A DNA stretch of 64,000 nt from positions 186,001 through 250,000 of the IMG/VR virus record IMGVR_UViG_3300044625_001067; one strand, 5' to 3'. Shown here one piece after another: positions 3-63,773 of the stretch. The notes beneath the pieces were generated by a model that was not told the DNA's origin, did no database searches, and was given only the letters and a program-made list of their open reading frames with translations. The translations under genes were made by a program, and so were the position numbers. Position 1 is the first letter of the stretch; every line of letters starts with the position of its first letter.

Positions 3-1307
3 GACGAGCACGTACAAAGTTCGTTCTCAAAGTTAGTTCAAGAGGTTGTATCGAGACCGTGGTACGTTGAGGAATACAGCTCAAAGCCTGGCGATACTGC
101 AGTAAGGGACTTCGTAGCAGAAATCCTCGAAGAACTACCCTTAGATGAGATATATAAGGGACTTGCTGAAGCTCTTATCGTGGGGTTTAGTGTTGGCGAA
201 ATAATGTGGAAGAAATCAAAACGCGGGGTAATACCCTTTGACATTAGAATTAGAGACCAGCGCCGATTTGTTTTCCAAGAAGCGGAAGACTCACAAACAG
301 GCTTCACAATGAGGTGCTTAACCTTCAATCGTATGTTTGAGGGGGTTGAGCTCCCTGCTCGAAAATTCGTCGTAAATCGCTACTGGACTCAGCACAACGG
401 GGACCCATACGGAACTTCGCTAGGGCGAGTTCTTTACCCCCTGGTGAAATTCCGGAGAAGAGCCCTTGAGTCCTACGTTCTCTATGGGGACCGGTATGCG
501 ACACCCACAGCTGTTGCGACCGCACCCCTAAGCGCGTCTTCTGCTGAAATTGACACGATCTATGATCATATCTCAAACTTATCTCAGGAAACTGCGCTTA
601 TTTTGCCGGAAGGGTACAAGCTTGAGTTTGTTAACCCGAGCGGAACTCCGGATGTGTTTAAGGGACTGATTGACTATATCGACAAGGAAATTAGCCTCAT
701 ACTTTGCGGGGAAAACGAGGCTGGGCAAGCTGAGTCTGGATCCAGAGCTTCTTCGCAGGTTGCAAACGTTGTTCGAGTTGTGAAGGCAGCGGAAATTTCC
801 GAAGCGATCTCTCACACTCTGACTCGCACTCTGGTACGATGGATTGTAGACCTTAACTTCGGTGTAGACGTTGCAGCGCCAACCCTCACAAGGGAGTTTC
901 GAATTGAGGAGTCTTCCCTCACTGCCACCGACCTGGGTTCCCTTATCGACAAGGGGTACAAACCGCGTAGGGAGTGGGTTGAGAGGCATTTTCGTATTGA
1001 GCTTGAAGACGAAGCTCCTGAGTTCATGACGAAAGAGGAAGAAGGGAATACCACCTATAGCCCTGACGAGGACGAGGACCTTTACGGATCTATTTTTGGT
1101 GCTGACGGGGAGTACCCCGAAGGAAGTCTGGAGGACGAGCCGGAGGGTGGCGACGAGCCAAAGCCGGAGGAAGAACCATCTGGTGAGCAAACCACGTACA
1201 ACCCTGAAGAAGACGGAAACCTTTACGACTCAGTGTTCGGGAATGACTTAGAACCCGCTGAAGAAGGCGAAAAGAAGGGTAAAAACGTGTATGAGTACAA
1301 CGAGTAG
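3..1307 (+). CDS. Portal protein, Mu gp29/DUF935-like (5'-truncated by window edge)
   Basis: Frame open from base 3 (DEHVQSSFSKLVQEVVSRPW...GFSVGEIMW...PYGTSLGR...LVRWIVDLNFG), motifs typical of DUF935 portals; first gene of head module; acidic C-terminal tail. Confidence 0.85.
   Translation, partial: DEHVQSSFSKLVQEVVSRPWYVEEYSSKPGDTAVRDFVAEILEELPLDEIYKGLAEALIVGFSVGEIMWKKSKRGVIPFDIRIRDQRRFVFQEAEDSQTGFTMRCLTFNRMFEGVELPARKFVVNRYWTQHNGDPYGTSLGRVLYPLVKFRRRALESYVLYGDRYATPTAVATAPLSASSAEIDTIYDHISNLSQETALILPEGYKLEFVNPSGTPDVFKGLIDYIDKEISLILCGENEAGQAESGSRASSQVANVVRVVKAAEISEAISHTLTRTLVRWIVDLNFGVDVAAPTLTREFRIEESSLTATDLGSLIDKGYKPRREWVERHFRIELEDEAPEFMTKEEEGNTTYSPDEDEDLYGSIFGADGEYPEGSLEDEPEGGDEPKPEEEPSGEQTTYNPEEDGNLYDSVFGNDLEPAEEGEKKGKNVYEYNE
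1277..1291 (+). promoter_or_regulatory. GGGTAAAR-N5-YA putative late promoter
   Basis: GGGTAAAAacgtgTA; the final A is the A of the ATG at 1291. Confidence 0.6.
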
Positions 1308-3870
1308 CAAAGTGTTTTCAAAACGTGTTCATGTTTTTACGGCGGGACCCCAGGTTTCTGCCCAGGGCGTAGAAAGGGACTTCACACCCCAAGACCTTCA
1401 GCAAGTTGTTGATTCCTACGACCCCCAAACACATGAGGCACCCCTTGTTATTGGTCATACTGGGGACAACGACAGTGTTCCTTCTTTTGGGTGGGTCAAA
1501 AAGTTGGTCAGAAGCGGAGAGAAGCTATACGCAGACGTTGACTTCACTGACACTGCTAAAGATTTAGTGAAAAAAGGGCATTACCGCAAAGTCTCCATAT
1601 CCTTCTACTCTCCAAACTCTCCAATTAACCCGCATGAGGGACAGTGGAGCGTTCGGCACTTGGCACTTTTGGGAGCGTCGCCCCCTGCGGTTAAGGGCCT
1701 GGAGCCTTTCTCGTTCTCTGAGGAAGGTGACGGAGTGTTCAACTTCGCTTCAGCCCTCTCTCCCGAAGACATCTTTGACGATGAGCTCGGCCCCACACTT
1801 CTTGTTGAGCGAGGCCCGTTGGAAATCCTAAAGGAAAAGCTTGAGGAAATTCGTGGAGACATGAGTTCTTCTCTTCAAGAGCTACAAGAAAACCAAGACG
1901 ATCAGACTGAAACAGACGTCGATTCGACACAAACTACAAATTCGGCGGATGAAAGTACCGCCCCCGAAAACCCTAACCAGCAATTTTCCGAAATGAAAAA
2001 GAAAATGGGGCGTGAAGGAGCTGAAGTCTCCGAATCCGCTCAAAGTCTAGCAAACATGGAAGACAAATTTCCAGAAGAGAAGTTCGACGAAGGAGTCTCT
2101 CGCAAAGTTGCGAAAGGGGCTCACGGCCACCACGTACAAGTTGTGGAAGAGGTTTTTGAAGAGGGCGATGAAGAACTCTCGGACGAACACCGTGAGATTC
2201 CCGCTGCTTTCAAGAAAAATATCGCTAAGGTGAAGGCTAAGAACAAAGCCACCGATGATGGTGACGAAGGCGACGAAGATGAACTTTCCGAGGAACACGG
2301 AGAAGTTCCTGCGGCATTCAAGAAAAATATCGCTAAGATGAAGGCCAAGAGCGCGAAAGTGGAAGAGTCTGACGAGGAAGACTCTGAGGGCGACTACGCT
2401 GAGGTAGGCTACAAAACATCTGCAAATCGGAAGGCATCGTTTGGAAAACGTGCTGAGAAGGATCCAGGGGATCCAGCTGGTCGTTCTAAAACAGCACGGT
2501 CATCCGACGATAGCTACGGGGACCGTCAGTCGGTTGGACAAGGGGGTGAGGAAGACCGCGAAGGTTTGACTTCAGACGTGGCGCAAGACACGGACCGTTT
2601 AAACACTGCTAAGGACGGTGACCAGGAGCAAGACCGAGAAGAGCTGGCGAAGGCACTCGACGGTGAAGGGGACGAAGATTCCCGTTGGGCTGACCAACCT
2701 GAGGGTCGCCGCCGTTCAATGGAAGACGACCAGTACAACGATGGTGAGTACGGACTTCCAGGAAGAAACAAACCGGGAACCTCCGATGGAAACGACCCCC
2801 ACGGTCGCGACGGCGGGCCAACAACCGTCTCTGAGGACTCTGAGGAAGAGCCCGACACCGAGGACATTGCTGTGCCACTTCAGAGCACCAAGGGCAACAA
2901 AGTTTCTCGCGTTCTTCACCAAACCTCCGGACAAAAGAGGGCGTCGGTCAAAGGTAAGGAAATTGCGGATCACAGCGAAGAGTCCGACGGTGTTACACGA
3001 ACTGCGAAAAGGGCAGGTGTTTCTGCGGGGAACGACCCCCACGGTCGCGAAGACGGACCCACAAACTTCCCAGACCGGTCCGAGGAAGAGCCGGACGACC
3101 TCGACATTGCTGTCGACCTGGAAAATGTAGTGGGTAATCGCAAAGTTCGTGTGCTGCGTCAGAGATCGGGTGAAAAGCCTTCGATTGACCACGCTGAAGA
3201 AGACGATCTTGACGTTGAGGAGTGTGAGTCCACTGGGAGAGTTTCTCGCAAGTTTGCAGAACGCGATCCAATGACTCGAACCGGGAAAGGCTCCACTTAT
3301 GGGCAGAAGCGTCCCGTTATGGAAGAGGATCCGGACGAGGATGGCGACCGTGACGACAACGAATTCGCTGAAACTGACGACTTCTGTGGAATGGGGTCAA
3401 TGGGCCAGGCTAAGCCTATGGGTTATCCCACCCAAATGTTCGAAGAGTTCCAACGCGAGCTGGAAAATCTTAAGAGCGAAAATTCTCGCCTGAAGAAAGA
3501 GTACCAGGAGCATCAGACCAGAACACGTAAGCAACGCATCGCCGACTTTGTTGACAGCCTGTACACTGAAGGAAAAATGACTGACGGGGTAATTCCTCAG
3601 AGAGAGCTTCAAAACTACTGCGAAGGTCTTGAGTTCGGTACACTTGACTTCGCAGAAGGAGAAACTCCAACGACCAAGTTGTTTGCGCTGCTTGAGCGTT
3701 TGCCCAACATGGTTCACTTCGGTGAAGTTGTCGCAGAGGGACGTTTCAGTGACCCTGAAGATGACGAAGATCTAGACCCCCATTCTCGTGCAATGAAGAT
3801 GGTTCAGGCTGGAGAGTGCGACTATGTCGAGGCAATTAAGCGTTCCATTCCTTGGGGAGGTCGGGGCTGA
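1291..3870 (+). CDS. Mu-like prohead protease/scaffold protein with long acidic linker
   Basis: N-terminal HEAPLVIGH...FGWV...YRKVSISFY...HLALLGASPPAVKGL protease signature; acidic middle with internal repeats; C-terminal coiled-coil scaffold. Confidence 0.85.
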   Translation: MSTTSSKVFSKRVHVFTAGPQVSAQGVERDFTPQDLQQVVDSYDPQTHEAPLVIGHTGDNDSVPSFGWVKKLVRSGEKLYADVDFTDTAKDLVKKGHYRKVSISFYSPNSPINPHEGQWSVRHLALLGASPPAVKGLEPFSFSEEGDGVFNFASALSPEDIFDDELGPTLLVERGPLEILKEKLEEIRGDMSSSLQELQENQDDQTETDVDSTQTTNSADESTAPENPNQQFSEMKKKMGREGAEVSESAQSLANMEDKFPEEKFDEGVSRKVAKGAHGHHVQVVEEVFEEGDEELSDEHREIPAAFKKNIAKVKAKNKATDDGDEGDEDELSEEHGEVPAAFKKNIAKMKAKSAKVEESDEEDSEGDYAEVGYKTSANRKASFGKRAEKDPGDPAGRSKTARSSDDSYGDRQSVGQGGEEDREGLTSDVAQDTDRLNTAKDGDQEQDREELAKALDGEGDEDSRWADQPEGRRRSMEDDQYNDGEYGLPGRNKPGTSDGNDPHGRDGGPTTVSEDSEEEPDTEDIAVPLQSTKGNKVSRVLHQTSGQKRASVKGKEIADHSEESDGVTRTAKRAGVSAGNDPHGREDGPTNFPDRSEEEPDDLDIAVDLENVVGNRKVRVLRQRSGEKPSIDHAEEDDLDVEECESTGRVSRKFAERDPMTRTGKGSTYGQKRPVMEEDPDEDGDRDDNEFAETDDFCGMGSMGQAKPMGYPTQMFEEFQRELENLKSENSRLKKEYQEHQTRTRKQRIADFVDSLYTEGKMTDGVIPQRELQNYCEGLEFGTLDFAEGETPTTKLFALLERLPNMVHFGEVVAEGRFSDPEDDEDLDPHSRAMKMVQAGECDYVEAIKRSIPWGGRG

Positions 3871-3901
3871 TAGCTCCGAGACTTCTGCTCAGAGTGGAAC
3901 T

Positions 3902-4609
3902 ATGGACCTTCTAACTTTGGTCGGGCAGGTAACAAAAAAGCGAGCGGACTACTTCTCTCAAGCCGAGGTCTTAGCTCGCAAAGCGAAAACACAAGAGAAG
4001 CTGGAAAGTCTCATGACAAACCAGTCGAAAGTTCTTGTGAAGGCTTTGCGAGACAAGGACATTCGCTGGGAGGAGTACTCTCGAACTTTGATTGATAAGA
4101 CACTGTCTGCAGCCCTCGCTGCCGTTCACCTAGGGGCAGGAAAAGCCTCGCCACAAGCAAAAGTCGAACGGGCATGGGGCACTGTAACCGGGCAAATGCT
4201 CCCACCTTTGTTGGAATTCTTGAGCCAAACCGAACTAGCACTAAACGACGGATCCCTAATGCTCGGCGACGACCGCATAAATTTCTCGGAAATTGATCTT
4301 GAAGATATGTACGAAGGGGGCGAAGAGGTACTTCCACCGAAGCCGAAAATGTCTTGGCTGAGCCTTGTTACCAGAGTCGTTCGCTACCTTGCAAACCCTT
4401 CCTACTCATTTTTCAACCTTGGTGACTCCTACGTGAAACAAGAGCAGGGTTACCGGGAGATGCGACGAGTGCCAGTGTTGGACACGAGAACTTGTCCTGA
4501 CTGCATAAAGTTTGGGGAGAAGGGGTGGCAGCCCTTTGGAACCCTGCCGATGCCGGGGCAAGAGTGCCGGTGCTACGATCGCTGCCGCTGCCGAATCGAC
4601 TACCGTTGA
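3902..4609 (+). CDS. MuF-like minor head (morphogenesis) protein
   Basis: C-terminal RRVPVLDTRTCPDC...PMPGQECRCYDRCRC resembles MuF/SPP1 gp7 C-terminus; head-module location; ATG 3902 preferred over overlapping upstream start. Confidence 0.65.
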   Translation: MDLLTLVGQVTKKRADYFSQAEVLARKAKTQEKLESLMTNQSKVLVKALRDKDIRWEEYSRTLIDKTLSAALAAVHLGAGKASPQAKVERAWGTVTGQMLPPLLEFLSQTELALNDGSLMLGDDRINFSEIDLEDMYEGGEEVLPPKPKMSWLSLVTRVVRYLANPSYSFFNLGDSYVKQEQGYREMRRVPVLDTRTCPDCIKFGEKGWQPFGTLPMPGQECRCYDRCRCRIDYR

Positions 4610-4640
4610 CGAACACACACTAACCCACTAACATACCATT

Positions 4641-5063
4641 ATGGCTATTCTAAAACCAGTTGTTGAATCCCAAGTAGAAATTTCACTGTCTCGAGACGAC
4701 GGGAGTATGCGTTATGACCGGTCTTTCACAGCAATATCCGAGCTAATTGCTCACAGATTTGGAGCAGAAGTTACTTACGACCCTATAACGATTGAGTCAG
4801 TCTTTGATCCTATTTTTCACAAAGATCTTCTTGCGTACTGCGTAGACGCTTTCAAAAACCCTGAAAAGCATGGGGAAACCTTCACGCTTGTTCTATCAAT
4901 GCGTCATTCCCACGGAAGTGAACAAGGGACGCGAGCTCAGTACGAAATTACCGGTTGTCAGCTGATTGGGTTTTCCTTCCCTAAGTTCGACCGAAATGTC
5001 GGAGATGCGGCTAAGTTCAAACTATGCTTTAGACCCTCTGGATTGTCAAAACTTCTTACCTGA
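4641..5063 (+). CDS. Tail tube-like protein (paralog of 9515-9958)
   Basis: MAILKPVVESQVEIS vs MAILRPITKSQYEVS; YEITGCQ..FDR vs YTCYGCQ..VDR. Confidence 0.55.
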   Translation: MAILKPVVESQVEISLSRDDGSMRYDRSFTAISELIAHRFGAEVTYDPITIESVFDPIFHKDLLAYCVDAFKNPEKHGETFTLVLSMRHSHGSEQGTRAQYEITGCQLIGFSFPKFDRNVGDAAKFKLCFRPSGLSKLLT

Positions 5064-5067
5064 AGCA

Positions 5068-5075
5068 GGGTAAAA
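5068..5075 (+). promoter_or_regulatory. GGGTAAAR putative late promoter
   Basis: GGGTAAAA in intergenic gap upstream of 5151. Confidence 0.55.
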
Positions 5076-5150
5076 CCTGAATAACTAAGCTAGGTGAAAA
5101 ACAAGTCCTAGAGGAAACAACAAAACCAATAACCCTTTGAAAATATCAAA

Positions 5151-5624
5151 ATGTCTTTGAACATCGCACCAGTTTACGGTAAGCAATTCATTCGTTACGC
5201 GGAGACTTTCACCGCTGCTACTGACAACCAAGGTGGAACGGCTGGAGTCGTTGAAATTCCTGAGTTTGCAGTTGTTGCTTACGCAACCTATGCCGGAGCA
5301 AACAAAGTTTGCGCCCCTGGCAACCTAACCGCGTTTGATGGGAAGATTGTAGGTGTGAACCAGGCCTACATTCCCACAGCCCTGTCTCAACCTCGCACCG
5401 CTCGTCAAGCTTCTGTGGCCACCAGTGGCTCCTTGCTTGTTGAAGTGAGTGCCAGCGCCGTGGCCCCCTTCGTACTCAACGCCCAGCTTTCAGTTGGTGC
5501 TGACGGCAAGGCGCTACCCACTGCGAATACCGGGACCAACGTCACTCTTGACGGTACTATCCCGCTCATTCGTGAAATCGTGCGAATCGGCGGTCGCACT
5601 GTCTTGCTGGTTTCATTCGCCTGA
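5151..5624 (+). CDS. Capsid decoration/cement protein (DUF2190-like)
   Basis: Small Ala/Gly/Val-rich protein directly upstream of major capsid; IVGV...ASVATSGSLLVE...SVGADGKA pattern. Confidence 0.6.
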   Translation: MSLNIAPVYGKQFIRYAETFTAATDNQGGTAGVVEIPEFAVVAYATYAGANKVCAPGNLTAFDGKIVGVNQAYIPTALSQPRTARQASVATSGSLLVEVSASAVAPFVLNAQLSVGADGKALPTANTGTNVTLDGTIPLIREIVRIGGRTVLLVSFA

Positions 5625-5659
5625 GAAAAGCTGACGCATTTCGGTGCGTTTTCACTAAG

Positions 5660-5690
5660 AGCCTTCAACTTTCGAGTTGGGGGCTTTTTT
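5660..5690 (+). terminator. Intrinsic terminator
   Basis: AGCCTTCAACT-TTCG-AGTTGGGGGCT followed by T-run. Confidence 0.8.
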
Positions 5691-5702
5691 CGTGAAAAAG
5701 AA

Positions 5703-5710
5703 GGGTATAA
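5703..5710 (+). promoter_or_regulatory. GGGTATAA variant promoter for major capsid gene
   Basis: Variant of the recurrent motif just after the terminator, 96 nt upstream of capsid ATG. Confidence 0.5.
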
Positions 5711-5798
5711 CTACAGTGACCCCAAAGTTTTAGGACTCGCGGGTCGGATTGCTTCGGCAATCTTTGAAGTCAACTTTACACACAAGGAAACATCTATT

Positions 5799-8700
5799 AT
5801 GATGAATCATAAAGGTTCCACTCAGAGGTGACTCTGATTGAAAATCGGGTGAATTGCTGGGACACCTTAGTTTTGCTTTTGCAAAACAGGCAATCAGCAG
5901 CCAAGGCCCCTAGGGATAGGGGCAAGGTTCAACGACTAGGATAAGTAATCTAGAACAGAAGAAAGTCCCAAGAGCGCCCGACTCTTTGCTCAGGCAAAGA
6001 TGATGATATAGTCTGAACTTTACAGAAATGTAGAGAAGTAAAGGATAAAGAGCCTTTACGATAACAAGTTGCTACAACAGACCTATGCAGGGGTCGATCC
6101 CATTTTTTAGAGTGGCTTTGTTTTAACAAAGAAAATCCGGTGAATTGCTGGGACACCTTAGTTTTGCTTTTGCAAAATAGGCAATCAGCAGCCAAGTTTA
6201 CTTAGGGTCTTTACTAGCTATAGTAGAGTTAGGTAAAAAGGTTCAACGACTAGAAGATGACTGACCCAAGAATAACTCTTCCACGAGCGCCGGGACTCAC
6301 TAGTTACAGACAACTAAACAGATACTTTTTCTTCTTAGAAAAATTCGGTTCCCTCGAAAAGTTTAAATGCTGTCACGAACACCACATCCACCCAACTAAA
6401 ATGGGAGGAAGTGATGCCAAAGTGAACTTAATTTACCTTACACCCAGGGCCCATTACATCGCCCATCAGCTCCTCTTTAGAGCATTTACGGGAAACCAAC
6501 AAGCCCAACGGGCTGCTTGGCTTATGTCCCACACGATTGACGAAGCTTTCGTCAATTCTAGGGTGTATGAGTTTCTAAAAAATAACTACATTTTTTCTGA
6601 AGAGACCCGTAATAAACTTTCTGAAGCAGGTAGGAATAGGAAACTTAGTTTCGAGTCCAGAGAAAAAATCTCTAACTCAAACAAAGAAACCTACAGAAAC
6701 ACCTCTAAAGAAGTTCTACTAGAGAGAATTGAAAGGATGAGGGAGACTAAGAGAGGTACCCCGTGGAATGAGAGTCATAGAAACTCTATCCCCCCTTCTC
6801 TTCCTAGGGGGAGAGATCACTGGAGACTAAAAGATAGTCCATTATGGGGTGTATCCGATGAAATACTCAAAGTATGGCTAGAGAATGGTAAACCATCTTA
6901 TGTTATGCTTTGTAGATTGTTAGGAATCCCCAAAACTAAATCTGTTATGTCTGTAATAAAGAGTATGATATAGTCTGAACTCTTTGGAAACAAGGAGAAG
7001 TAGAGGATAAAGAGCCTTTACGATAACAAATGTCTTACAACCCTTGCACAAGGTTTTATGCTTCCGTCAACAAATATTGCGAATTTTATCGCACCGGTTG
7101 TTGACACTCCTACCAGAGCTGGGAGAATTCTCAGATTTGGGAAGGAACAGTTTGCTATAAACGATTTCCGTCGTGCTTACGGAACTAACATCCCATACGT
7201 CCAAAGCCGCTACGACTCTGAGCCTTATGCTCTAGAGCAGGAAGTGGTCGCCTGGGAATTGCCTGAAGAGGTTGAATCAATAGCCTCCATCAGTTGAGAA
7301 ACTGAAAGAAAAACTGGGTGAATTGCTGGGAAGCCTACGGCTTCAAACGAGAGTTTGAAACTATGGTAATCAGCAGCGAAGCGTTTTCGGGAGAAAACGA
7401 ACGTTCAACGACTAACAGCATACCACTAGAACAGTGATGAAGCTGACAAGAGCGCCTAGCACCCTAACAAGGGTGAAGATATAGTCTGAACTTTCTGGAA
7501 ACAGAAAGAAGTAAAGGATAAAGAGCCTTTACGATAACAGTATTGAATTGAAAACGCTGGCGAGGGTTGTTTGGCTCTTGCTGTGGCAGCTTAACCACAA
7601 ATTAACTGGGTGAATTGCTGGGATCCCTGAATTTCCATTAAAGAAACAGGCAATCAGCAGCCAAGTTTACTACGTCGAGAAGTCACTATGATTTCTGTGG
7701 TGAAAAGGTTCAACGACTAGACGATGAGTTTCGACAACAATAACTCGTCCACGAGCGCCCAGAGCAACATAACGTGCCATTACCGTAACAAATACGAAAA
7801 GTGGTACTGGACTTTAATCAACAAGTTTGAAAATAGAGACTACCTTCCAAAAAAGTTCGAAAATCACCACCCGGTACCAAAAGAGATCTGGCCCAAAGAC
7901 TGGGATAGTCGTGAGATTATAACCACTGTTGGAGTTAGTGTGAGGGAGCACTTCATACTACACCTACTACTAACCAAAGTGGGATTCAGCCACTCTTCCC
8001 TTATCAGATTTCTAAAAGGTTTTCGAAGGGGCCAACAAAGGGGCTTACACGCTACCAACTTAAAAAAGTTGTGGGATCGCTACCAGTTTAAGGGAGACAA
8101 TCTTCCGGATAAACCTTGGGAGCACAGCTACAGGGAAGATTTAAGTTTTCTCGACCTTTGGGTAGACGCTGACTACTTTTATTGGGTGTGGTTGAACATA
8201 CTTCCTACCCCCCTGGGGAAAGGATCCGGCTACCCCGGAAACGGCTATCGAAATCTGTCGAAAGCGGTTGGAGTTAAACCCACAAAGTCGATCAGAAGGA
8301 TGGTAATCTATTTCAAGGCAGGATGGGATCCCTTAAAGGACCCAAGTTGGTTAGATTTCGTTGCTAAGATATAGTCTGAACTTTCTGGAAACAGAAAGAA
8401 GTAAAGGATAAAGAGCCTTTACGATAACAATTTGCCTGCACAAGTAGATCTTCGTGCGATTGAAACAAGGAATGCGATGTCGAGGCTAAACACATTGGCC
8501 CTATGAGCTTAAGCTCATTTAGAAAATTGGGTGAATTGCTGGGAAACCTGACGGTTTCAGGAATGACTTCTCTGAAACACAAGGCAATCAGCAGCCAAGT
8601 TTACTACGTCGAGAAATCGCTATGATTTCTGTGGTGAAAAGGTTCAACGACTAGACGATGAGTTTCGACAACAATAACTCGTCCACGAGCGCCCAACTCT

Positions 8701-9486
8701 TTGCTTAGGCAAAGATGATGATATAGTCTGAGCTTCATGGAAACATGAAGATGTGGGGGATAAAAAGCCTTCACGATAACACAATGAATGAACAGCTACG
8801 AGTACACCGTTGCTCAAGCTGTTTCCGTCACCGCGACTTACAACCCTTACGAGCCCTATAACGGAACCGCAGGTTCCCAGACCGGACTCGGTTTCACAAC
8901 CTGGACAAACTTCAAGACAGCTTACGGCTCCGTTGCTGGAGACGCCGCCTGGTCTGGTGCTACTTCTAACCCAATTGAAGACATCCTAACCCTCAAGCGT
9001 GCAGTCGCCAACCAAATCGGTATCCGTCCAAACTCCGCAGTCGTCGGTACTGCCGTGTTTGACCTCTTGCTGACCAACGAGAAGATCCTTGATCGTATCA
9101 AGTACACATCTGCAGACAGCGTCGACACTGACGTCATTGCTCGCTACTTCGGTCTTGAGCGTGGCCTACGTGTTGCCGAAGGTCGTTACTTAGCGCAAGA
9201 TGGAACCCTACAGCCGGTATTCCCAGCTAACGGTATCCTTCTGTTCTACAGCCCTAACGGTCCTTCTGATTCCATCATGCCTGCTGGTGGTGCGAATGCT
9301 GCGACTCCTGCCTTCTCTTACACATATCAGCTCACAGGCACCCCCGCCGTCCGTCCCGAATACTACATTCGTGAACGTCGCGTTGTGCGTGCTGAAATCA
9401 CAATTGAACGTGTGGTTAACCTGGTTGGCCTCGGCGCAACTGGTCTTATCGGTTCTGGCGCTATGATCACCAACATCCTATCCTGA
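5799..9486 (+). CDS. Major capsid protein, spliced: join(5799-5807,6072-6103,7033-7272,7546-7567,8435-8487,8787-9486), 351 aa
   Basis: Removing five group I introns gives one 1056-nt frame: MMNLQQTYAGVDPILTTLAQGFMLPSTNIANFIAPVVDTPTRAGRILRFGKEQF...LPEEVIENAGEGPAQVDLRAIETRNAMSRLMNSYEY...; VDP.LT.LA.G / FGKE.F pattern of Mu-like capsids; RBS AAGGA upstream. Confidence 0.9.
5808..6071 (+). ncRNA. Group I intron 1 of capsid gene (264 nt, ORF-less)
   Basis: P1 GAAU|...GUUC with U-G; P3 CGGGUG/CGCCCG; GCAATCAGCAG; TTCAACGACTA; GATATAGTC; terminal G 6071. Confidence 0.9.
6104..7032 (+). ncRNA. Group I intron 2 of capsid gene (929 nt, carries HNH ORF)
   Basis: P1 CCAU|...GUGG; P3 CCGGUG/CGCCGG; same core motifs; terminal G 7032. 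Confidence 0.9.
6257..6973 (+). CDS. Intron-encoded HNH homing endonuclease with NUMOD3-like repeats
   Basis: HEHHIHP..MGGSD..NLIYLTPRAHYIAHQLL HNH signature; SEETRNKLSEA / SREKISNS repeats; lies within intron 2. Confidence 0.85.
   Translation: MTDPRITLPRAPGLTSYRQLNRYFFFLEKFGSLEKFKCCHEHHIHPTKMGGSDAKVNLIYLTPRAHYIAHQLLFRAFTGNQQAQRAAWLMSHTIDEAFVNSRVYEFLKNNYIFSEETRNKLSEAGRNRKLSFESREKISNSNKETYRNTSKEVLLERIERMRETKRGTPWNESHRNSIPPSLPRGRDHWRLKDSPLWGVSDEILKVWLENGKPSYVMLCRLLGIPKTKSVMSVIKSMI
7273..7545 (+). ncRNA. Group I intron 3 of capsid gene (273 nt, ORF-less)
   Basis: P1 GAGGU|...GCCUC; P10 UCAAU/AUUGA; P3 CUGGGUG/CGCCUAG; core motifs; terminal G 7545. Confidence 0.9.
7568..8434 (+). ncRNA. Group I intron 4 of capsid gene (867 nt, carries HNH-like ORF)
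   Basis: P1 GAGGGU|...GCUCUU; P3 CUGGGUG/CGCCCAG; core motifs; terminal G 8434. Confidence 0.9.
7724..8374 (+). CDS. Intron-encoded HNH-like homing endonuclease
   Basis: KYEKWYWTLI...ENHHPVPK...VSVREHFILHLLL; C-terminal region resembles that of 6257-6973; within intron 4. Confidence 0.75.
   Translation: MSFDNNNSSTSAQSNITCHYRNKYEKWYWTLINKFENRDYLPKKFENHHPVPKEIWPKDWDSREIITTVGVSVREHFILHLLLTKVGFSHSSLIRFLKGFRRGQQRGLHATNLKKLWDRYQFKGDNLPDKPWEHSYREDLSFLDLWVDADYFYWVWLNILPTPLGKGSGYPGNGYRNLSKAVGVKPTKSIRRMVIYFKAGWDPLKDPSWLDFVAKI
8488..8786 (+). ncRNA. Group I intron 5 of capsid gene (299 nt, ORF-less)
   Basis: P1 GGCU|...GGCC; P10 CAUU/AAUG; P3 UUGGGUG/CGCCCAA; core motifs; terminal G 8786. Confidence 0.9.
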
Positions 9487-9514
9487 TAAGGGAAGGTACT
9501 AAGGAGGTGACCCA

Positions 9515-9958
9515 ATGGCAATTCTCAGACCGATTACAAAGTCTCAGTACGAAGTTAGCTTCGTAGCTCCTGACGGACCCACACTAATCGCCACGTTTAC
9601 AAAATTCAGCGGAATCAAAGATTCCTCAAGTAGCAGTGACTACGCCAATGGTACTGGTAACCGTATTTACAAAGTTGTAGGCCCCAAAAAGGTAGACAAC
9701 ATCTCCCTTTCTGCTCCGTACGATCCCACGATCTTCAAGCAGTTGGAAATTTACTGGTTGCAGTATAATTGCAGAGAAATCACAGTTACAGTCACTCCGA
9801 AGGACTGTGTTGGAAACGGATCAGCCCCCGCTGGCGGCCAATACACTTGCTACGGATGTCAGTTCATGTCTCTTAATACCGCCGATGTTGACCGTGAAAG
9901 CGGCAATGTTCAGGAAATTGAGATTCAACTAACCGTGAACTCTTGGGACCGAACCTGA
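9515..9958 (+). CDS. Tail tube protein
   Basis: 147 aa, FTKFSGI...ITVTV...Y.CYGCQ..LNTADVDRESGNVQEIEIQLTV pattern of contractile tail tubes; RBS AAGGAGG. Confidence 0.65.
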   Translation: MAILRPITKSQYEVSFVAPDGPTLIATFTKFSGIKDSSSSSDYANGTGNRIYKVVGPKKVDNISLSAPYDPTIFKQLEIYWLQYNCREITVTVTPKDCVGNGSAPAGGQYTCYGCQFMSLNTADVDRESGNVQEIEIQLTVNSWDRT

Positions 9959-9970
9959 TTCTCAACTCGA

Positions 9971-10016
9971 AAAGCCCCCTAACCGGGGCTTTTTTTTTTT
10001 TTTTTTTTTTTTTTTT
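9971..10016 (+). terminator. Intrinsic terminator with unusually long T-tract
   Basis: AGCCCC-CTAACC-GGGGCT hairpin then about 27 T. Confidence 0.8.
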
Positions 10017-10028
10017 GTGCCTACAAGA

Positions 10029-10036
10029 GGGTAAAA
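10029..10036 (+). promoter_or_regulatory. GGGTAAAR putative late promoter
   Basis: GGGTAAAA right after terminator, upstream of 10065. Confidence 0.6.
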
Positions 10037-10064
10037 CCTCTGTAAGAACGAACCTTAAGAAGAA

Positions 10065-10541
10065 ATGGCCAAAACTCTGTTTTCAAGTGGCGTTGTCGTA
10101 ACAAGCGAGTGGCTAAATGGTGCAAGGAACATTGTTTTCGACGGCCAAGACCTTGACTGGCACTACGACCCCTTGGGTCTCGACGACCTTGAAAAAACAG
10201 GGCCCACAGGCTTAGACAGCCGCTACGTCACACTAACCACTGAGCAACCCACGTTGTCTGGCACCGGCCTACTTCTGTCGGGTACTCCGGTTTCCGGTTC
10301 AAAAGTTGTCACAGGGTACTGGGGGTTCGGCTTTGACCCTGCTTCAAACCCCACTCTCACTCAGAACTACAACAAGGCCCCGCGAAGTTTTCTAACAAAC
10401 CTTAAGTATAGCAACGCCAACGGCATCAGCCCTTCCTCGGCTAGCCAGAAATTCGCAGCGTTAGCAGACGCAGACTTGGTAACGAAAAAAGTATTGTCCG
10501 ACCAGCTCAACGCTCTTGTGGTGGATAACGGTACATACTGA
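10065..10541 (+). CDS. Hypothetical virion (baseplate/tail) protein
   Basis: ORF heading baseplate operon; GVVVTSEWLN N-terminus resembles tail-associated proteins. Confidence 0.5.
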   Translation: MAKTLFSSGVVVTSEWLNGARNIVFDGQDLDWHYDPLGLDDLEKTGPTGLDSRYVTLTTEQPTLSGTGLLLSGTPVSGSKVVTGYWGFGFDPASNPTLTQNYNKAPRSFLTNLKYSNANGISPSSASQKFAALADADLVTKKVLSDQLNALVVDNGTY

Positions 10542-60819: not shown

Positions 60820-63773
60820 ATGGCAGATCCCTTTTCCGGGGGACTCGGAAGTACGAAACAAGAGATTGGAATACTAACCGAAGCGAAAGAGAGAAACAAG
60901 GCAGCGTCCTTCCGGTCGAAGAAAGACGGAGAGGAAAAACAAGAGAAGAAAAAGAGAGCACCCACAAAAGTGTCCGAGCTTTACAACTCAGGCGTCACTC
61001 TGCTGAAGGCGAAGGGGTTCGTTATTGAGATCGACGAGTCCGGTGACCACTGTAAGCACCGTATTCTGAAGCCCACGCCACCGGTAATGGTAAGGGGAAT
61101 TCAGTACCCGGCAGACTTCAACCCCTTGCAGGATATCTCAGTTTACGACGACTTTGAAAAAGTCGAGTCATGCTTCCATCCTGACTTGTGTCCAGACGAC
61201 GTAAGAACTTTCTGGGAACCTTTATTCAAACCGAAAGCCGGTGACTCAGATCTCGTCTCTTTCACAGAGCGGCTGCTGAAGATGAAGAGAATAAACATGA
61301 GCAAGAGCATTCATGAAACGCTAAGTTACGGCCATACATTTGACCCTGCGGCTCGGTGGGGTGGAGTTCCTGTCTCTAATCCAAGGTCGTGGGTACCAGA
61401 CAGAGACTGGTTCAACCCTGTTCTGCAACTGGTTACCCTAGCTGACGTTTTCTCTATCTTTCCTGAGGCAGAGCGGGAAATGCTCAGGTTGATTATTGGG
61501 CGAATCGGGGTAGGCAGGTCAAATCACTTGCCACCGGGAAAGGACCAGCCTGTAGATCACACTGCTCGTATGGCGGGGGTGATTGTGGGTAAGGATGCTG
61601 GATTAGGAAAGTCGACTCTCTTCAATGGAATGACCGCAGCTTTTTCCAAGTGCGGTTTTGTAACCCACACGTTTAAATCGACTGAGGATCGCTTCGGCCT
61701 TAAAGCTGCTGCTCTTAGTGACATAGCATACAAGGATGATACCTCCTTGGCTTCTCTCAAGAAGTTCCTTGCTTCTGAGGAGACCAAGATTTTGATCACG
61801 AATGGGCTTTTCCAAGTAGAAGAAAAGTTCGAGAAGGCCGAGCAAATTTGGCCAAAGACAGTCATATTGGTTAACTCCAATGACTGGAACAGTAAGTTTG
61901 CCTACGACTTAGATCCGGGGATTGACGCACTAGTCCCCCTGCCCGGTAACGGACAGTAAAAAACGCATTCTAAACGGGGGAACCCCTTGGCGGGTAAAAT
62001 CTGTAAAACAAGGGCAATCCCGTGCTAAGTGGAATTTATCGAATCTTTTGTACGTCAAATGGTAAGTCATACACTGGATCCTCAATAAACATTGACTCTC
62101 GGTGGGGTAAGCACATATACTTACTTCGCAAAGACTGTCATTCTAATGTTCACCTTCAAAACTGCTTCAACAAGTACGGTAGAGAATCTCTAGAGTTCAG
62201 CTTGCTTGAAGACCTTAGCGGTCTACCCCTGGACGAGATCCGGGAGGTTGAGCAGAAATACTTGGACTCCCTGGACTGGAGTGAAGCACTAAACATATGC
62301 AAAGACTCCAGGGGTGGGCAGATAACAGAGGAAGCTAATGAGAGACGAAGGGAGTCTCTAAGGGACTATTACAAAACTAACCCCGATGCTTTGCGGGGGG
62401 GAGAATAATCCCTTCTATGGCAAAAAACACAGTCAAAGTACAAAAGACAGCATATCCAGAGCTAATAGCGGCAAGATGAGGTCAGACGAGTTTAAGAGAC
62501 AGAAATCTGAGTTTATGTCTAACCGCAAGGGCGTACACCATAGCGAAGAACACAAAAGTAAACTAAAGGACAAGTTTACCGGCGGCGGTAATCCTAATGC
62601 CATAGAGACCGTCATCAACGGTGTAGTGTACCCTACAAAACGTGAAGCCCTGAGAGCTTTGGGCCTGAGATATGACTATCAACTTGATAAACACCTAAAA
62701 GCCGAACGACTATCCCGAGAGGGAGTAGAGTCAAGTGACTCGAAACGAATGCCCCCTGTGTAAGCAGGGAGAAGATATAGTCTGCTCTGAATGGTAACAT
62801 TCAGCTGGGTTAGTCCCGGAAAAAGTCTAACGATCTTTTTTGAACATTTGGTATTGATCGCATTAAGCTCATTAGTACATATAGGGAGTATGAGGTAACA
62901 AAAAACATCGAGAACACGAAAGGGACAGTGTCAGAGGGGTCTCCCGACCTTCGCCCACGAGCACACATTCCTTACCTCTCTAATAAGCTAGGTGTGAGTG
63001 CTGATGCGTTGTATCTTTGGTGTCTCCGCCTCGCTACCGATAGGTTCTGGGAAATCATTAACGATGTAGCTGATCCCCGCATCAATCGCCTTCAGGTTGA
63101 AGTGCGCTATTGGACCACACGACAAAGGATCCGATTCAAAGCCGATGTCACACAGGCACTCGTTAATGCCATGGCGTTCGCTCACTCGGTTCGAACGGGG
63201 TCAGACCTTAGCTTCATGCCCGAGCTGACGCCGGATGTTCTCTACGAGTATCTCAGTTCTCTTTACTTTGTGGGAGTGGACCCGTCGTGCCAACACTTAA
63301 CTGCGAGCATGAAAAAAGAGTGGGAGAACGCAGGGCGTCCGTCGACACATTACTACCAAGGTTTCCGAGAGCTAAGGTGGGAATCTGTGAGAAAGGCAAT
63401 TTCCCTCGCACGAGAGTTTCTGTTCGACGAAACGACGGGTCAGCGGCAAGAGACCAAGGACAAAACAGCTCTGACGCTAATTCGAGAGATAATGGAAAAG
63501 CTGGTGATGAGGGATGGTTTTAAGATTGGTGGCGAGGCGAACTACGTCATTGAAAACTGGAACAATTGTCGTCACGCTCAAGAGGAACTTGTTTTGGAAG
63601 GGGAAAAGCTAGTTGAATCCATGGAAGACATGGACAAACAAAGACTACTCAACCCTAAGACAAATTGCTGTGACGATTGGCTTCTTGACAAGAACTACTC
63701 ACCCGATGTTGCTGAAAGGTTCCGAGAATCCGCACGTAAAAAACTCTACGAGGTTAAAGGGGTAAAAGTATGA
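60820..63773 (+). CDS. SF3/D5-like helicase, spliced: join(60820-61922,62852-63773), 674 aa
   Basis: Walker A GKDAGLGKST, Walker B IAYKDD, motif C ILVNSN; splicing restores LDPGIIDRIKLIS (Arg finger region) in frame with ORF 62928-63773. Confidence 0.8.
61992..61999 (+). promoter_or_regulatory. GGGTAAAR motif inside intron upstream of GIY-YIG gene
   Basis: GGGTAAAA in the P5 region, 30 nt before GTG at 62022. Confidence 0.5.
62022..62763 (+). pseudogene. Intron-encoded GIY-YIG homing endonuclease with NUMOD3 repeats, frameshifted at G7 run 62395-62401
   Basis: SGIYRI...YTGSS..I..RW..H; second ORF GENNPFYGKKHS; removing one G fuses both (LRGENNPFYG). Confidence 0.8.

Follow-up and report, generated by a model that had tools for sequence, protein, structure and literature searches.

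We found that the major capsid gene of a 277-kb freshwater phage is split by five inserts which score as group I introns of one family, and that these introns keep site-specific guide regions but appear to have swapped ribozyme hairpins and endonuclease genes with one another. Each ribozyme module has a different nearest pair among the five introns and no single tree fits all of them (PHI: P < 0.001). Related phages carry between 0 and 11 such introns in the same gene. The analysed stretch, hereafter the window, comprises 64,000 nucleotides (positions 186,001 to 250,000) of IMG/VR record IMGVR_UViG_3300044625_001067.

Structure of the interrupted capsid gene

All five inserts reached the Rfam gathering score (50 bits) for the group I intron family RF00028 (Table 1). 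Folding of each exon end plus intron start with RNAfold gave P1 and P2 for all five introns, with the U before the 5′ splice site paired as U.G in P1, and all five introns end in G; this rule holds at nearly all sites in relatives. Removal of the introns in silico restores a 351-aa ORF which is collinear with the intronless capsid proteins of S-CBWM1 and of the relative L013. Another weak RF00028 hit near 62.7 kb belongs to a different intron family and is not part of this system.

RNA contigs carry the predicted joints 5807>6072, 7272>E4>8434 and 8487>8787. It should be noted that the contig joining exons 3 to 6 differs from the window in exons 3 and 4 and could come from an intronless strain; only the intron 1 joint, in a contig which is identical to the window and runs on into intron 2, is hard to explain without splicing. 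In the RNA run X17 exon word depth was 380-650 against 18-50 over introns, whereas depth was flat in the DNA run X1.

Two of the introns contain ORFs. For the intron 2 ORF, NUMOD3 scored 24.9 bits against a cut-off of 20.4, and an HHIxP...GG...N...LTxREHxxxH motif was seen by alignment in this ORF and most relatives. Pfam HNH, HNH_4 and HNH_5 matched several members weakly and the profile hit solved HNH domains (pyocin AP41, E = 0.0017). The intron 4 ORF is homologous to this family (45% identity over 86 aa to the site-281 ORF) but lacks the GG...N part of the motif. Pfam gave nothing for this ORF or for the 157-aa ORF upstream of the capsid gene.

Table 1. Features of the capsid gene and blocks shared between its introns (window coordinates).
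Feature	Coordinates	Strand	Length	Description	Evidence
Exon 1	5799..5807	+		ATG ATG AAT; MMN	Intronless relative L013 reads ATGATGAAT directly followed by CTACAACAG; RNA contig joint 5807>6072
Intron 1 (site 9)	5808..6071	+	264 nt	No ORF; P1/P2 at 5808-5847	RF00028 91.0 bits; U at -1 and terminal G; joint 5807>6072 in an RNA contig continuing at 100% identity into intron 2
Exon 2	6072..6103	+	32 nt		Spliced alignment and tblastn against the S-CBWM1 capsid protein
Intron 2 (site 41)	6104..7032	+	929 nt	238-aa HNH/NUMOD3 endonuclease ORF at 6257-6973, looped out of P8	RF00028 50.7 bits; NUMOD3 E=2e-5; HNH motif in alignment
Exon 3	7033..7272	+	240 nt		79% aa identity to S-CBWM1 capsid residues 15-94
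Intron 3 (site 281)	7273..7545	+	273 nt	No ORF	RF00028 107.2 bits
Exon 4	7546..7567	+	22 nt	Micro-exon	IENAGEG aligns to S-CBWM1 residues 95-101; an E4-like 21 nt lies between the E3 and E5 joints in an RNA contig
Intron 4 (site 303)	7568..8434	+	867 nt	216-aa ORF at 7724-8374 (divergent HNH-family member), starting in P7.1/7.2, reading through P3′ and stopping in J8/7	RF00028 69.3 bits; ORF 65% identical to the same-site ORF of the relative L027; ORF-less allele in L010 and L002
Exon 5	8435..8487	+	53 nt		tblastn; joint 8487>8787 in an RNA contig gives ...SRL/MNSYEY, the same length as S-CBWM1
Intron 5 (site 356)	8488..8786	+	299 nt	No ORF; keeps the first 13 codons of the intron 4 ORF	RF00028 95.5 bits
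Exon 6	8787..9486	+	700 nt	Includes the stop codon	62% aa identity to S-CBWM1 capsid residues 122-342; Pfam Phage_cap_E E=1.2e-10
Block shared by introns 1 and 2	5848-5905 / 6139-6196		58 nt	P3-P5	1 mismatch (5887)
Block shared by introns 4 and 5	7648-7761 / 8582-8695		114 nt	P4′-P6-P7-P7.1/7.2-P3′	2 mismatches (7682, 7685)
Block shared by introns 3 and 4	7476-7539 / 8366-8429		64 nt	3′ part	0 mismatches
Block shared by introns 1 and 5	5981-6016 / 8696-8731		36 nt	P8 and J8/7-P7′	1 mismatch (5991)

Conflicting relationships among the five introns

The preliminary description had claimed that the five introns are mosaics which share four near-identical blocks in conflicting pairs, and this was confirmed exactly. 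None of the blocks extends a single base further on either side, and a repeat search found the same families independently. Its outer limits, 5808 and 8786, are the true first base of intron 1 and the terminal G of intron 5. Two small corrections were needed: each intron runs 2-6 nt past the shared ATAACA to its terminal G, and intron 5 starts at 8488.

The nearest pair was introns 1 and 2 for the P5 loop, introns 4 and 5 for P6 and P7.1/7.2, introns 1 and 5 for P8 and introns 3 and 4 for P9 to the 3′ end, whereas P1/P2 was unique to every intron. Identity in P1/P2 was 52-64% for every pair, while each shared module was 92-100% identical in one pair only. Max-chi-square tracts were significant by permutation for introns 1 and 2, 3 and 4, and 4 and 5 (P ≤ 0.003) and for introns 1 and 5 (P = 0.02). 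The PHI test gave P < 0.0001 on all 34 informative sites and P = 0.0003-0.002 without P1/P2. Of 561 informative site pairs, 225 were incompatible, and the incompatible splits clustered by module. Functional constraint or convergence is a very unlikely cause of these identities. The core strands are conserved in all copies and every module is a constrained hairpin, but the shared tracts include loops and peripheral stems for which 20-40 other working variants exist in the family, and constraint would act on all five introns and not on one pair per module. Identity of 98-100% over 64-114 nt also stands against 50-67% for the other pairs.

We also considered whether the mosaic reflects chimeric or collapsed assembly of repeated introns from a mixed phage population. 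Many related contigs (L002-L009) begin or end within the gene, k = 31 contigs break at every shared block, and several strains with different intron sets co-exist. However, all six exons are present once, in order and in frame, and L011, a contig from another metagenome, is collinear with the window over 5000-10500 at 99.56% identity. The k = 31 contigs of runs X1 and X4 bridge the unique-to-shared junctions with zero mismatches. The shared blocks, with diagnostic SNPs 3 to 40 nt apart, are shorter than reads and than the final assembly k values, and hybrid joints in other strains share only 7-10 nt, too few for a de Bruijn artefact. A repeat mis-join would delete exons but would not swap an internal hairpin. 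An artefact is therefore unlikely, although no long reads were available to exclude it, long-range order rests on short-read assemblies plus the required exon order, and the IMG/VR loci and the runs may come largely from one lake series, so that their independence is partial.

Intron polymorphism in related phages

In IMG/VR relatives one intron family occupies 12-13 sites, all in the first 357 nt of the gene. We recovered 50 unique introns from 80 loci which share the same core anchors, and 11 of 11 introns in the relative L012 and 10 of 11 in L027 also passed the RF00028 gathering score. Each intron is built from self-contained hairpins (P1/P2, P4-P5, P6, P7.1/7.2, P8 with or without an HNH endonuclease ORF, and P9/P9.1) joined by core strands that are nearly identical in every copy: GGTGAATTGCTGGG, AATCAGCAGCCAAG, GTTCAACGACTA, GAGCGCC and GATATAGTCTGA. 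A 32-35 nt insert lies between GTTCAACGACTA and GAGCGCC in all copies. Module variants folded as the expected autonomous hairpin in 38/38 cases for P4-P5, 30/30 for P6, 22/22 for P8 and 40/41 for P9+P9.1.

Modules occurred in shuffled combinations, with 16 strict four-gamete violations between module types. On segment trees of 48 unique introns, P1/P2 followed the insertion site (16 label changes vs 35 when shuffled) and not the phage lineage (P = 0.12), whereas P3-P5 followed lineage (17 vs 27) more than site (29 vs 35.5). The ORFs form site-specific HNH subfamilies which are tied to sites across lineages. Near-identical modules (≥ 95% identity) shared between different sites were strongly enriched within one lineage: P5 loop types were shared in 26/234 within-lineage pairs against 2/797 between-lineage pairs (P = 1e−15), and in only 4/84 same-site pairs across lineages. 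It should be noted that these pair counts are not independent, and that in a comparison of three genomes (the window, L012 and L027) mean module identity hardly differed between same-genome and same-site pairs; the lineage signal comes from the near-identical class and the trees. Paralogues within a genome were not more alike than orthologues for P1/P2 or the ORFs.

Strains with near-identical capsid exons (exon 6 98-100% identical in protein) carry ORF+ and ORF- alleles at sites 9, 93 and 303. These alleles differ by whole cassettes (P6-P8, or P8 alone) bounded by conserved core strands, and the ORF-less version matches paralogous introns. At site 9, the ORF+ introns of L005 and L008 and the ORF- intron of the window are identical in P1-P5 and in P7′-to-end, but their P6-P8 blocks differ completely, and the ORF-less block matches the site-36 and site-93 paralogues. 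At site 303 only P8 and the ORF differ. Serial duplication to new sites followed only by divergence cannot produce such interior replacements and is very unlikely as the sole explanation. All copies do share one core, and sites 9 and 93 share P1/P2 and a ...GAAT target while other sites also repeat their exon ends, which suggests colonisation of look-alike sites. Recent spread of an intron to new sites would also make paralogues alike, and it probably contributes.

The inference of the preliminary description, that modules are swapped by recombination or gene conversion while guide sequences stay site-specific and that this may also be how endonuclease ORFs are gained and lost, is thus supported, with qualifications. 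Exchange had been placed between neighbouring introns, but adjacent introns share near-identical modules in 15/150 comparisons and non-adjacent ones in 32/510 (P = 0.15). Intron 5 had been described as intron 4 with its ORF replaced by the intron 1 P8 hairpin, but it resembles intron 4 only from P6 to P3′; its P1/P2, P5 loop and P9 tail differ, and the true ORF-less allele of intron 4 exists in L010 and L002 with its own P8.

Proposed mechanism and comparison with known systems

We consider it likely that the mosaics arose by homologous recombination, most likely non-crossover gene conversion, between paralogous introns. This would occur during phage replication and during repair of endonuclease-made breaks, would start and end in the shared core strands, and would replace one or several hairpins of one intron with those of a paralogue, in the same genome or in a co-infecting relative. 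The same cassette exchange would remove or install the endonuclease ORF. Selection would then filter the products: the capsid protein is essential, so only products that still splice and keep the exons in order survive. This would explain why P1/P2, which must pair with the local exon, stays site-specific, and the same applies to the endonuclease subfamily, which must cut the local target. Everything else behaves as a shared pool. The recombination pathway, its triggers and its direction are inferred.

Exchange within one genome cannot be told apart from exchange between co-infecting strains. It is possible, as a refinement which does not exclude the above, that exchange happens mainly between co-infecting strains as part of endonuclease-driven homing with out-of-register repair. 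Intron presence and absence differ among strains with near-identical exon 6 proteins, hybrid introns appear in other samples, and intron-encoded HNH enzymes are present. The P6 of window intron 5 is identical to the site-303 allele of L002 and not to the window's own intron 4, and L010 is 99.9% identical to the window upstream of intron 4 but 97.5% downstream of intron 5. However, L012 carries 11 ORF-less introns with strong within-contig sharing of P5 and P6 types and no endonuclease to start homing, and within-lineage enrichment fits either route.

More tentatively, the 5′ third of this capsid gene may act as a natural nursery for one group I intron family, in which introns colonise new sites wherever the old guide sequence can still pair. 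Repeated exon ends (...GAAT at sites 9 and 93, ...GTGGAT at sites 36 and 318, ...CGGT at sites 149 and 191) and the restriction of all sites to 357 nt are hints of this. After arrival, introns would acquire a site-matched HNH enzyme and keep their ribozyme parts homogenised by continual module exchange, yielding up to 11 introns and 5-nt exons in one essential phage gene, and the array may serve strain-against-strain competition. If true, this would be the densest known array of self-splicing introns in a viral or bacterial protein gene, and a tractable natural system for studying how group I introns reach new sites.

How group I introns reach new sites, and how ribozyme and endonuclease gene co-evolve, have mostly been studied with single introns. 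This system offers many natural alleles of one family in one essential gene, including parts tied to the site, parts which circulate freely and ORFs present or absent as cassettes, and so makes the modular exchangeability of ribozyme domains, the endonuclease gain-and-loss cycle and the role of recombination in intron spread testable. It is also worthy of note that gene callers will miss such capsid genes and that short-read assemblies break inside them, so intron-rich marker genes can distort surveys of phage diversity.

The likely precedent is the spontaneous domain shuffling of the phage T4 td, nrdB and sunY introns (Bryk & Belfort, Nature 1990), where recombination through conserved core elements appears to yield chimeric introns and endonuclease ORFs are probably looped out of the ribozyme. 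The T4 introns seem to lie in three different genes, with exchange seen as rare laboratory events that rearrange the genome, whereas here 5 to 11 copies lie in one essential gene, 5 to 240 nt apart, and natural alleles show module replacement that keeps the gene intact. Staphylococcus phage Twort (three introns in orf142; I-TwoI) and the SPO1 and Bastille DNA-polymerase introns (I-HmuI, I-BasI) (PMC3984707) are also phage group I introns in essential genes, several per gene, which encode HNH-family endonucleases, and the intron core gave blastn hits to Bacillus, Staphylococcus, Streptococcus and Clostridium phage introns. They number two or three per gene, against 5 here and 11 in relatives, and as far as we found in literature searches, which also returned no description of the present system, no module mosaicism or site-by-site population polymorphism has been described for them. 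In the intron-rich huge gut phages (Jug phages, mean 18.5 group I introns per genome; PMC12880540) and crAss-like phages, many group I introns and stand-alone or intronic HNH genes also fragment essential genes, with splicing supported by metatranscriptomes, but there the introns are spread over many genes with 2-3 pieces per gene, whereas here one family is packed into 357 nt of one gene and recombinant modules are documented. Multi-intron rRNA and organelle genes, including cyanobacterial rRNA (PMC1995217) and fungal rDNA with proposed reverse-splicing spread (PMC1299323), likewise have many group I introns in one conserved gene, presence/absence polymorphism and spread to new sites that can pair with the guide sequence. 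Those introns usually belong to different subgroups with independent origins, whereas here all copies are one family and their internal parts evolve in concert.

Structure of the interrupted capsid gene

The 277,244-bp IMG/VR virus record is rated 98% complete and the runs that hold it are lake-water and freshwater metagenomes. Rfam's group I intron model (RF00028) matched five times on the + strand between 5794 and 8750, at 50.7 to 107.2 bits against a gathering score of 50. The host gene is the major capsid gene: its last exon carries Pfam Phage_cap_E (E=1.2e-10) and the exons align in order to the uninterrupted 342-aa major capsid protein of Synechococcus phage S-CBWM1. The joined exons give a 351-aa open frame. 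A sixth group I intron, belonging to a different family and supported by a weak RF00028 hit, interrupts a P-loop gene elsewhere in the window which looks primase/helicase-like.

Coordinates of introns, exons and ORFs in the window and in related IMG/VR contigs
Sequence	Feature	Coordinates	Note
Window	E1	5799-5807	
Window	I1	5808-6071	
Window	E2	6072-6103	
Window	I2	6104-7032	ORF 6257-6973
Window	E3	7033-7272	
Window	I3	7273-7545	
Window	E4	7546-7567	
Window	I4	7568-8434	ORF 7724-8374
Window	E5	8435-8487	
Window	I5	8488-8786	
Window	E6	8787-9486	
Window	Sixth group I intron, different family	61960-62840	Weak RF00028 hit at 62642-62804, 30.9 bits; GIY-YIG/NUMOD-type endonuclease ORF split into two frames (62022-62408 and 62386-62763)
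Window	ORF of the P-loop gene	60820-61959	Continuing near 62928
L012	Capsid gene with 11 introns	6671-9999	
L027	Capsid gene with 11 introns	578-6833	
L008	Site-74 intron	1641-1855	
L009	Site-74 intron	1148-1362	
L016	Site-74 intron	7757-7971	
L005	Intron ORF, truncated or shortened in appearance	316-906	
L009	Intron ORF, truncated or shortened in appearance	1684-2262	
L022	Intron ORF, truncated or shortened in appearance	1541-1861	
L029	Intron ORF, truncated or shortened in appearance	4721-5107	

The boundaries were fixed by three kinds of evidence: intronless relatives, for example the related IMG/VR locus L013, which reads ATGATGAAT followed directly by CTACAACAG; the U-before and G-at-end rule, together with P1 and P2 folds for all five introns; and joints in metatranscriptome contigs at 5807>6072, 7272>E4-like 21 nt>8434, and 8487>8787. 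It should be noted that the contig which joins E3-E4-E5-E6 differs from the window in E3 and E4 and may therefore come from an intronless strain. The intron-1 joint, however, lies in a contig that continues, 100% identical to the window, through exon 2 into intron 2, and this contig looks like a partly spliced precursor. In the RNA run X17 exon depth was 380-650 and intron depth 18-50, whereas in the DNA run X1 depth was flat at about 62-70.

Mosaic relationships among the five introns

The four blocks which the preliminary description reported as shared between pairs of introns were found exactly as described: 58 nt with 1 mismatch, 114 nt with 2, 64 nt with 0 and 36 nt with 1. None of these blocks extends further on either side. 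We cut each intron at five core strands that are invariant or nearly so (GGTGAATTGCTGGG, AATCAGCAGCCAAG, GTTCAACGACTA, GAGCGCC and GATATAGTCTGA) and found that the nearest pair of introns changed between modules: I1-I2 for the P5 loop (97% identity), I4-I5 for P6 (95%) and P7.1/7.2 (100%), I1-I5 for P8 (92%) and I3-I4 for P9 to the 3' end (96%). P1/P2 had no nearest pair, with an identity of 52-64% in every pair. The 34 ungapped informative sites supported splits that change along the intron: {1,2}, then {4,5} with {1,3}, then {3,4}. Of 561 site pairs, 225 were incompatible. The PHI statistic lay below all 10,000 permutations, and P was 0.0003-0.002 when P1/P2 was left out. Max-chi-square tracts gave P ≤ 0.003 for I1-I2, I3-I4 and I4-I5, and 0.02 for I1-I5. 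No single duplication tree fits.

We also considered whether this pattern could be an assembly artefact. This is unlikely, although no long read across the whole 3 kb was available and the samples may belong to one lake series. All exons occur once, in order and in frame, and L011, a contig from another metagenome, is collinear with window 5000-10500 at 99.56% identity. The k=31 contigs of runs X1 and X4 cover the unique-to-shared transitions with no mismatch and, as expected, break inside the repeats. Many related contigs, including L002-L009, L014 and L015, also begin or end inside the intron-rich part of the capsid gene; short-read assemblies evidently break at these repeats, and gene callers would miss the split capsid gene. 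Other samples contain further hybrid introns: one has an intron-3-like 5' part joined at 7367>7652 to the intron-4/5 P6 module behind a different P1/P2, and another joins 7449>5972. The two sides of these joints share only 10 and 7 nt, which is too little for a de Bruijn artefact.

Intron distribution and module sharing in related phages

Exon 6 has 285 relatives in IMG/VR, of which we fetched 80 loci, and the window's spliced coding sequence was aligned to each with a splice-aware aligner. Among 67 complete genes, 52 have no intron, 7 have one, 2 have three, 1 has four, 3 have five and 2 have eleven (L012 and L027). The introns occupy 12-13 sites: after coding positions 9, 36, 41, 74, 93, 149, 160, 191, 273, 281, 303, 318/322 and 356. 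All lie in the first 357 of 1056 nt, with none in the remaining 700 nt, and exons can be as short as 5-11 nt (5, 8 and 11 nt in the two genes with eleven introns). Rfam confirmed 11 of 11 introns in L012, all of which lack an ORF, and 10 of 11 in L027, where four introns carry one. Forty-eight of the 50 unique introns carry all five core strands. The two site-74 alleles are more divergent but still score 66 bits with RF00028; this intron is shorter (215 nt) and has altered core strands (GGTGAACTGCGGGA, GTTCAGAGACTA).

Strains whose exon 6 is 98-100% identical to the window in protein differ greatly in their introns. L010 has sites 9, 41, 281 and 303 (without ORF) and lacks 356; L002/3/4/9 have 281 and 303 (without ORF), and L009 also shows 36, 74 and 93 upstream; L005 has 9 (with ORF), 36 and 74 only; and L008 has 9, 36, 74, 93 and 318. 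L010 is 99.9% identical to the window upstream of intron 4 but only 97.5% identical downstream of intron 5 (window 5061-7762 and 8788-10500), and it lacks the intron-4 ORF and the whole of intron 5. This looks like a genetic-exchange boundary sitting at the introns.

Module barcodes showed that P1/P2 types follow the insertion site. ORF length and subfamily also follow the site, with lengths of 635 nt at site 9, 675 at 41, 679 at 93, 608 at 303, 537/590 at 281, 560 at 318 and 738 at 357. Same-site ORFs from different lineages are 55-86% identical in protein, against 26-53% between sites. All ORFs are one HNH family, several with NUMOD3 repeats. Several intron ORFs in relatives look truncated at the N-terminus or shortened (107-197 aa, some starting inside the HNH motif), suggesting endonuclease decay alongside the intact copies.

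In contrast, the P5-loop, P6, P7.1/7.2, P8 and P9 types occur in many combinations, with 16 strict four-gamete violations, 10 of them between P6 and P7.1/7.2. On segment trees, P1/P2 needed 16 site changes against 35 when labels were shuffled and showed no lineage signal (P = 0.12), whereas P3-P5 needed 17 lineage changes against 27 shuffled, but 29 site changes against 35.5. Near-identical modules (≥ 95%) shared by introns at different sites were concentrated within a lineage, both for the P5 loop (26/234 against 2/797, P = 1e−15) and for P6 (28/234 against 14/797, P = 6e−10). However, these pair counts are not independent, so we read the P values as descriptive. Same-site introns of different lineages rarely shared such modules (3-5 of 84), and six of the eleven introns of L012 carry one P5-loop type. 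Adjacency of introns did not matter significantly (15/150 against 32/510, P = 0.15).

Exchange tracts, ORF turnover and the proposed mechanism

We then compared alleles at the same site with and without an ORF. At site 9, the ORF-bearing alleles (L005, L008) and the window's ORF-less intron 1 are identical in P1-P5 (with one difference from L008) and from J8/7 to the 3' end, while everything from P6 through P8 is different. The ORF-less block matches the P6 of the site-36 introns and the P7.1-P8 of the ORF-less site-93 intron. Site 93 shows the same kind of replacement between L009 (ORF) and L008 (no ORF). At site 303, the window's intron 4 and the L010/L002 alleles differ only between GAGCGCCCAG and AAGATATAG, where a 608-nt ORF segment stands against a 25-nt P8 hairpin.

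The endonuclease ORFs overlap the ribozyme core at both ends (window 7724-7762, 8656-8705 and the ORF ends at 6962-6973 and 8363-8374). They start inside P7.1/7.2 and read through P3', giving the shared N-terminus MSFDNNNSSTSAQ, and stop inside J8/7-P7' (...DDIV*, ...KI*, ...MI*); translation and ribozyme folding should therefore compete. Intron 5 keeps intron 4's start codon and first 13 codons before its P8 hairpin, and retains a 16-codon remnant of this ORF start. Its P6-P3' block therefore derives from an ORF-bearing intron, in agreement with the preliminary description, in which intron 5 was seen as intron 4 with its ORF replaced by the P8 hairpin of intron 1. However, its P1/P2, P5 loop and P9 tail come from elsewhere. 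Its P5 loop matches the site-281 allele of L002, and its P6 is identical to the site-303 allele of L002 rather than to the window's own intron 4.

The exchange of modules appears to be tolerated because they are structurally autonomous. Folded alone, the variants gave the expected hairpin in 38 of 38 cases for P4-P5, 30 of 30 for P6, 22 of 22 for P8 and 40 of 41 for P9 plus P9.1, and all L9 loops are GAAA-type. The modules are bracketed by 7-14 nt of invariant core, often extended by neighbouring identical bases. These are the places where crossovers must lie, because all tract ends fall there.

The inference in the preliminary description, that recombination or gene conversion swaps ribozyme modules between neighbouring introns while guide sequences stay site-specific, is supported with qualifications. 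We infer that the most likely process is homologous recombination between paralogous introns, mainly non-crossover gene conversion, which would occur during phage replication and during repair of breaks made by the intron-encoded HNH enzymes, within a genome or between co-infecting strains. Reciprocal crossovers between different sites would delete or duplicate capsid exons and be lost, as would patches that replace the guide region, because the intron could no longer pair with its exon. This leaves site-specific P1/P2 and endonucleases on a shared pool of ribozyme hairpins. Spread to new sites probably also contributes, as sites 9 and 93 share P1/P2 and the exon end ...GAAT, sites 36 and 318 share ...GTGGAT and sites 149 and 191 share ...CGGT, as if new sites are taken where an existing guide sequence can pair.

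The introns are ordinary members of group I, and it is their modular concerted evolution and their density which vary on known biology. We found no report of one intron family packed at up to 11 copies into one phage gene, with natural module exchange and site-tied endonucleases, although the literature searched was incomplete. Recombination between T4 introns through core elements appears to have been demonstrated in the laboratory (Bryk and Belfort 1990). Group I introns with HNH enzymes in essential phage genes are classical, as in Twort, SPO1 and Bastille (PMC3984707), and multi-intron rRNA genes and spread by guide-sequence pairing are also known (PMC1995217, PMC1299323). Intron-rich huge phages have likewise been described, for example the Jug phages, which have a mean of 18.5 introns per genome and 2-3 pieces per gene (PMC12880540).
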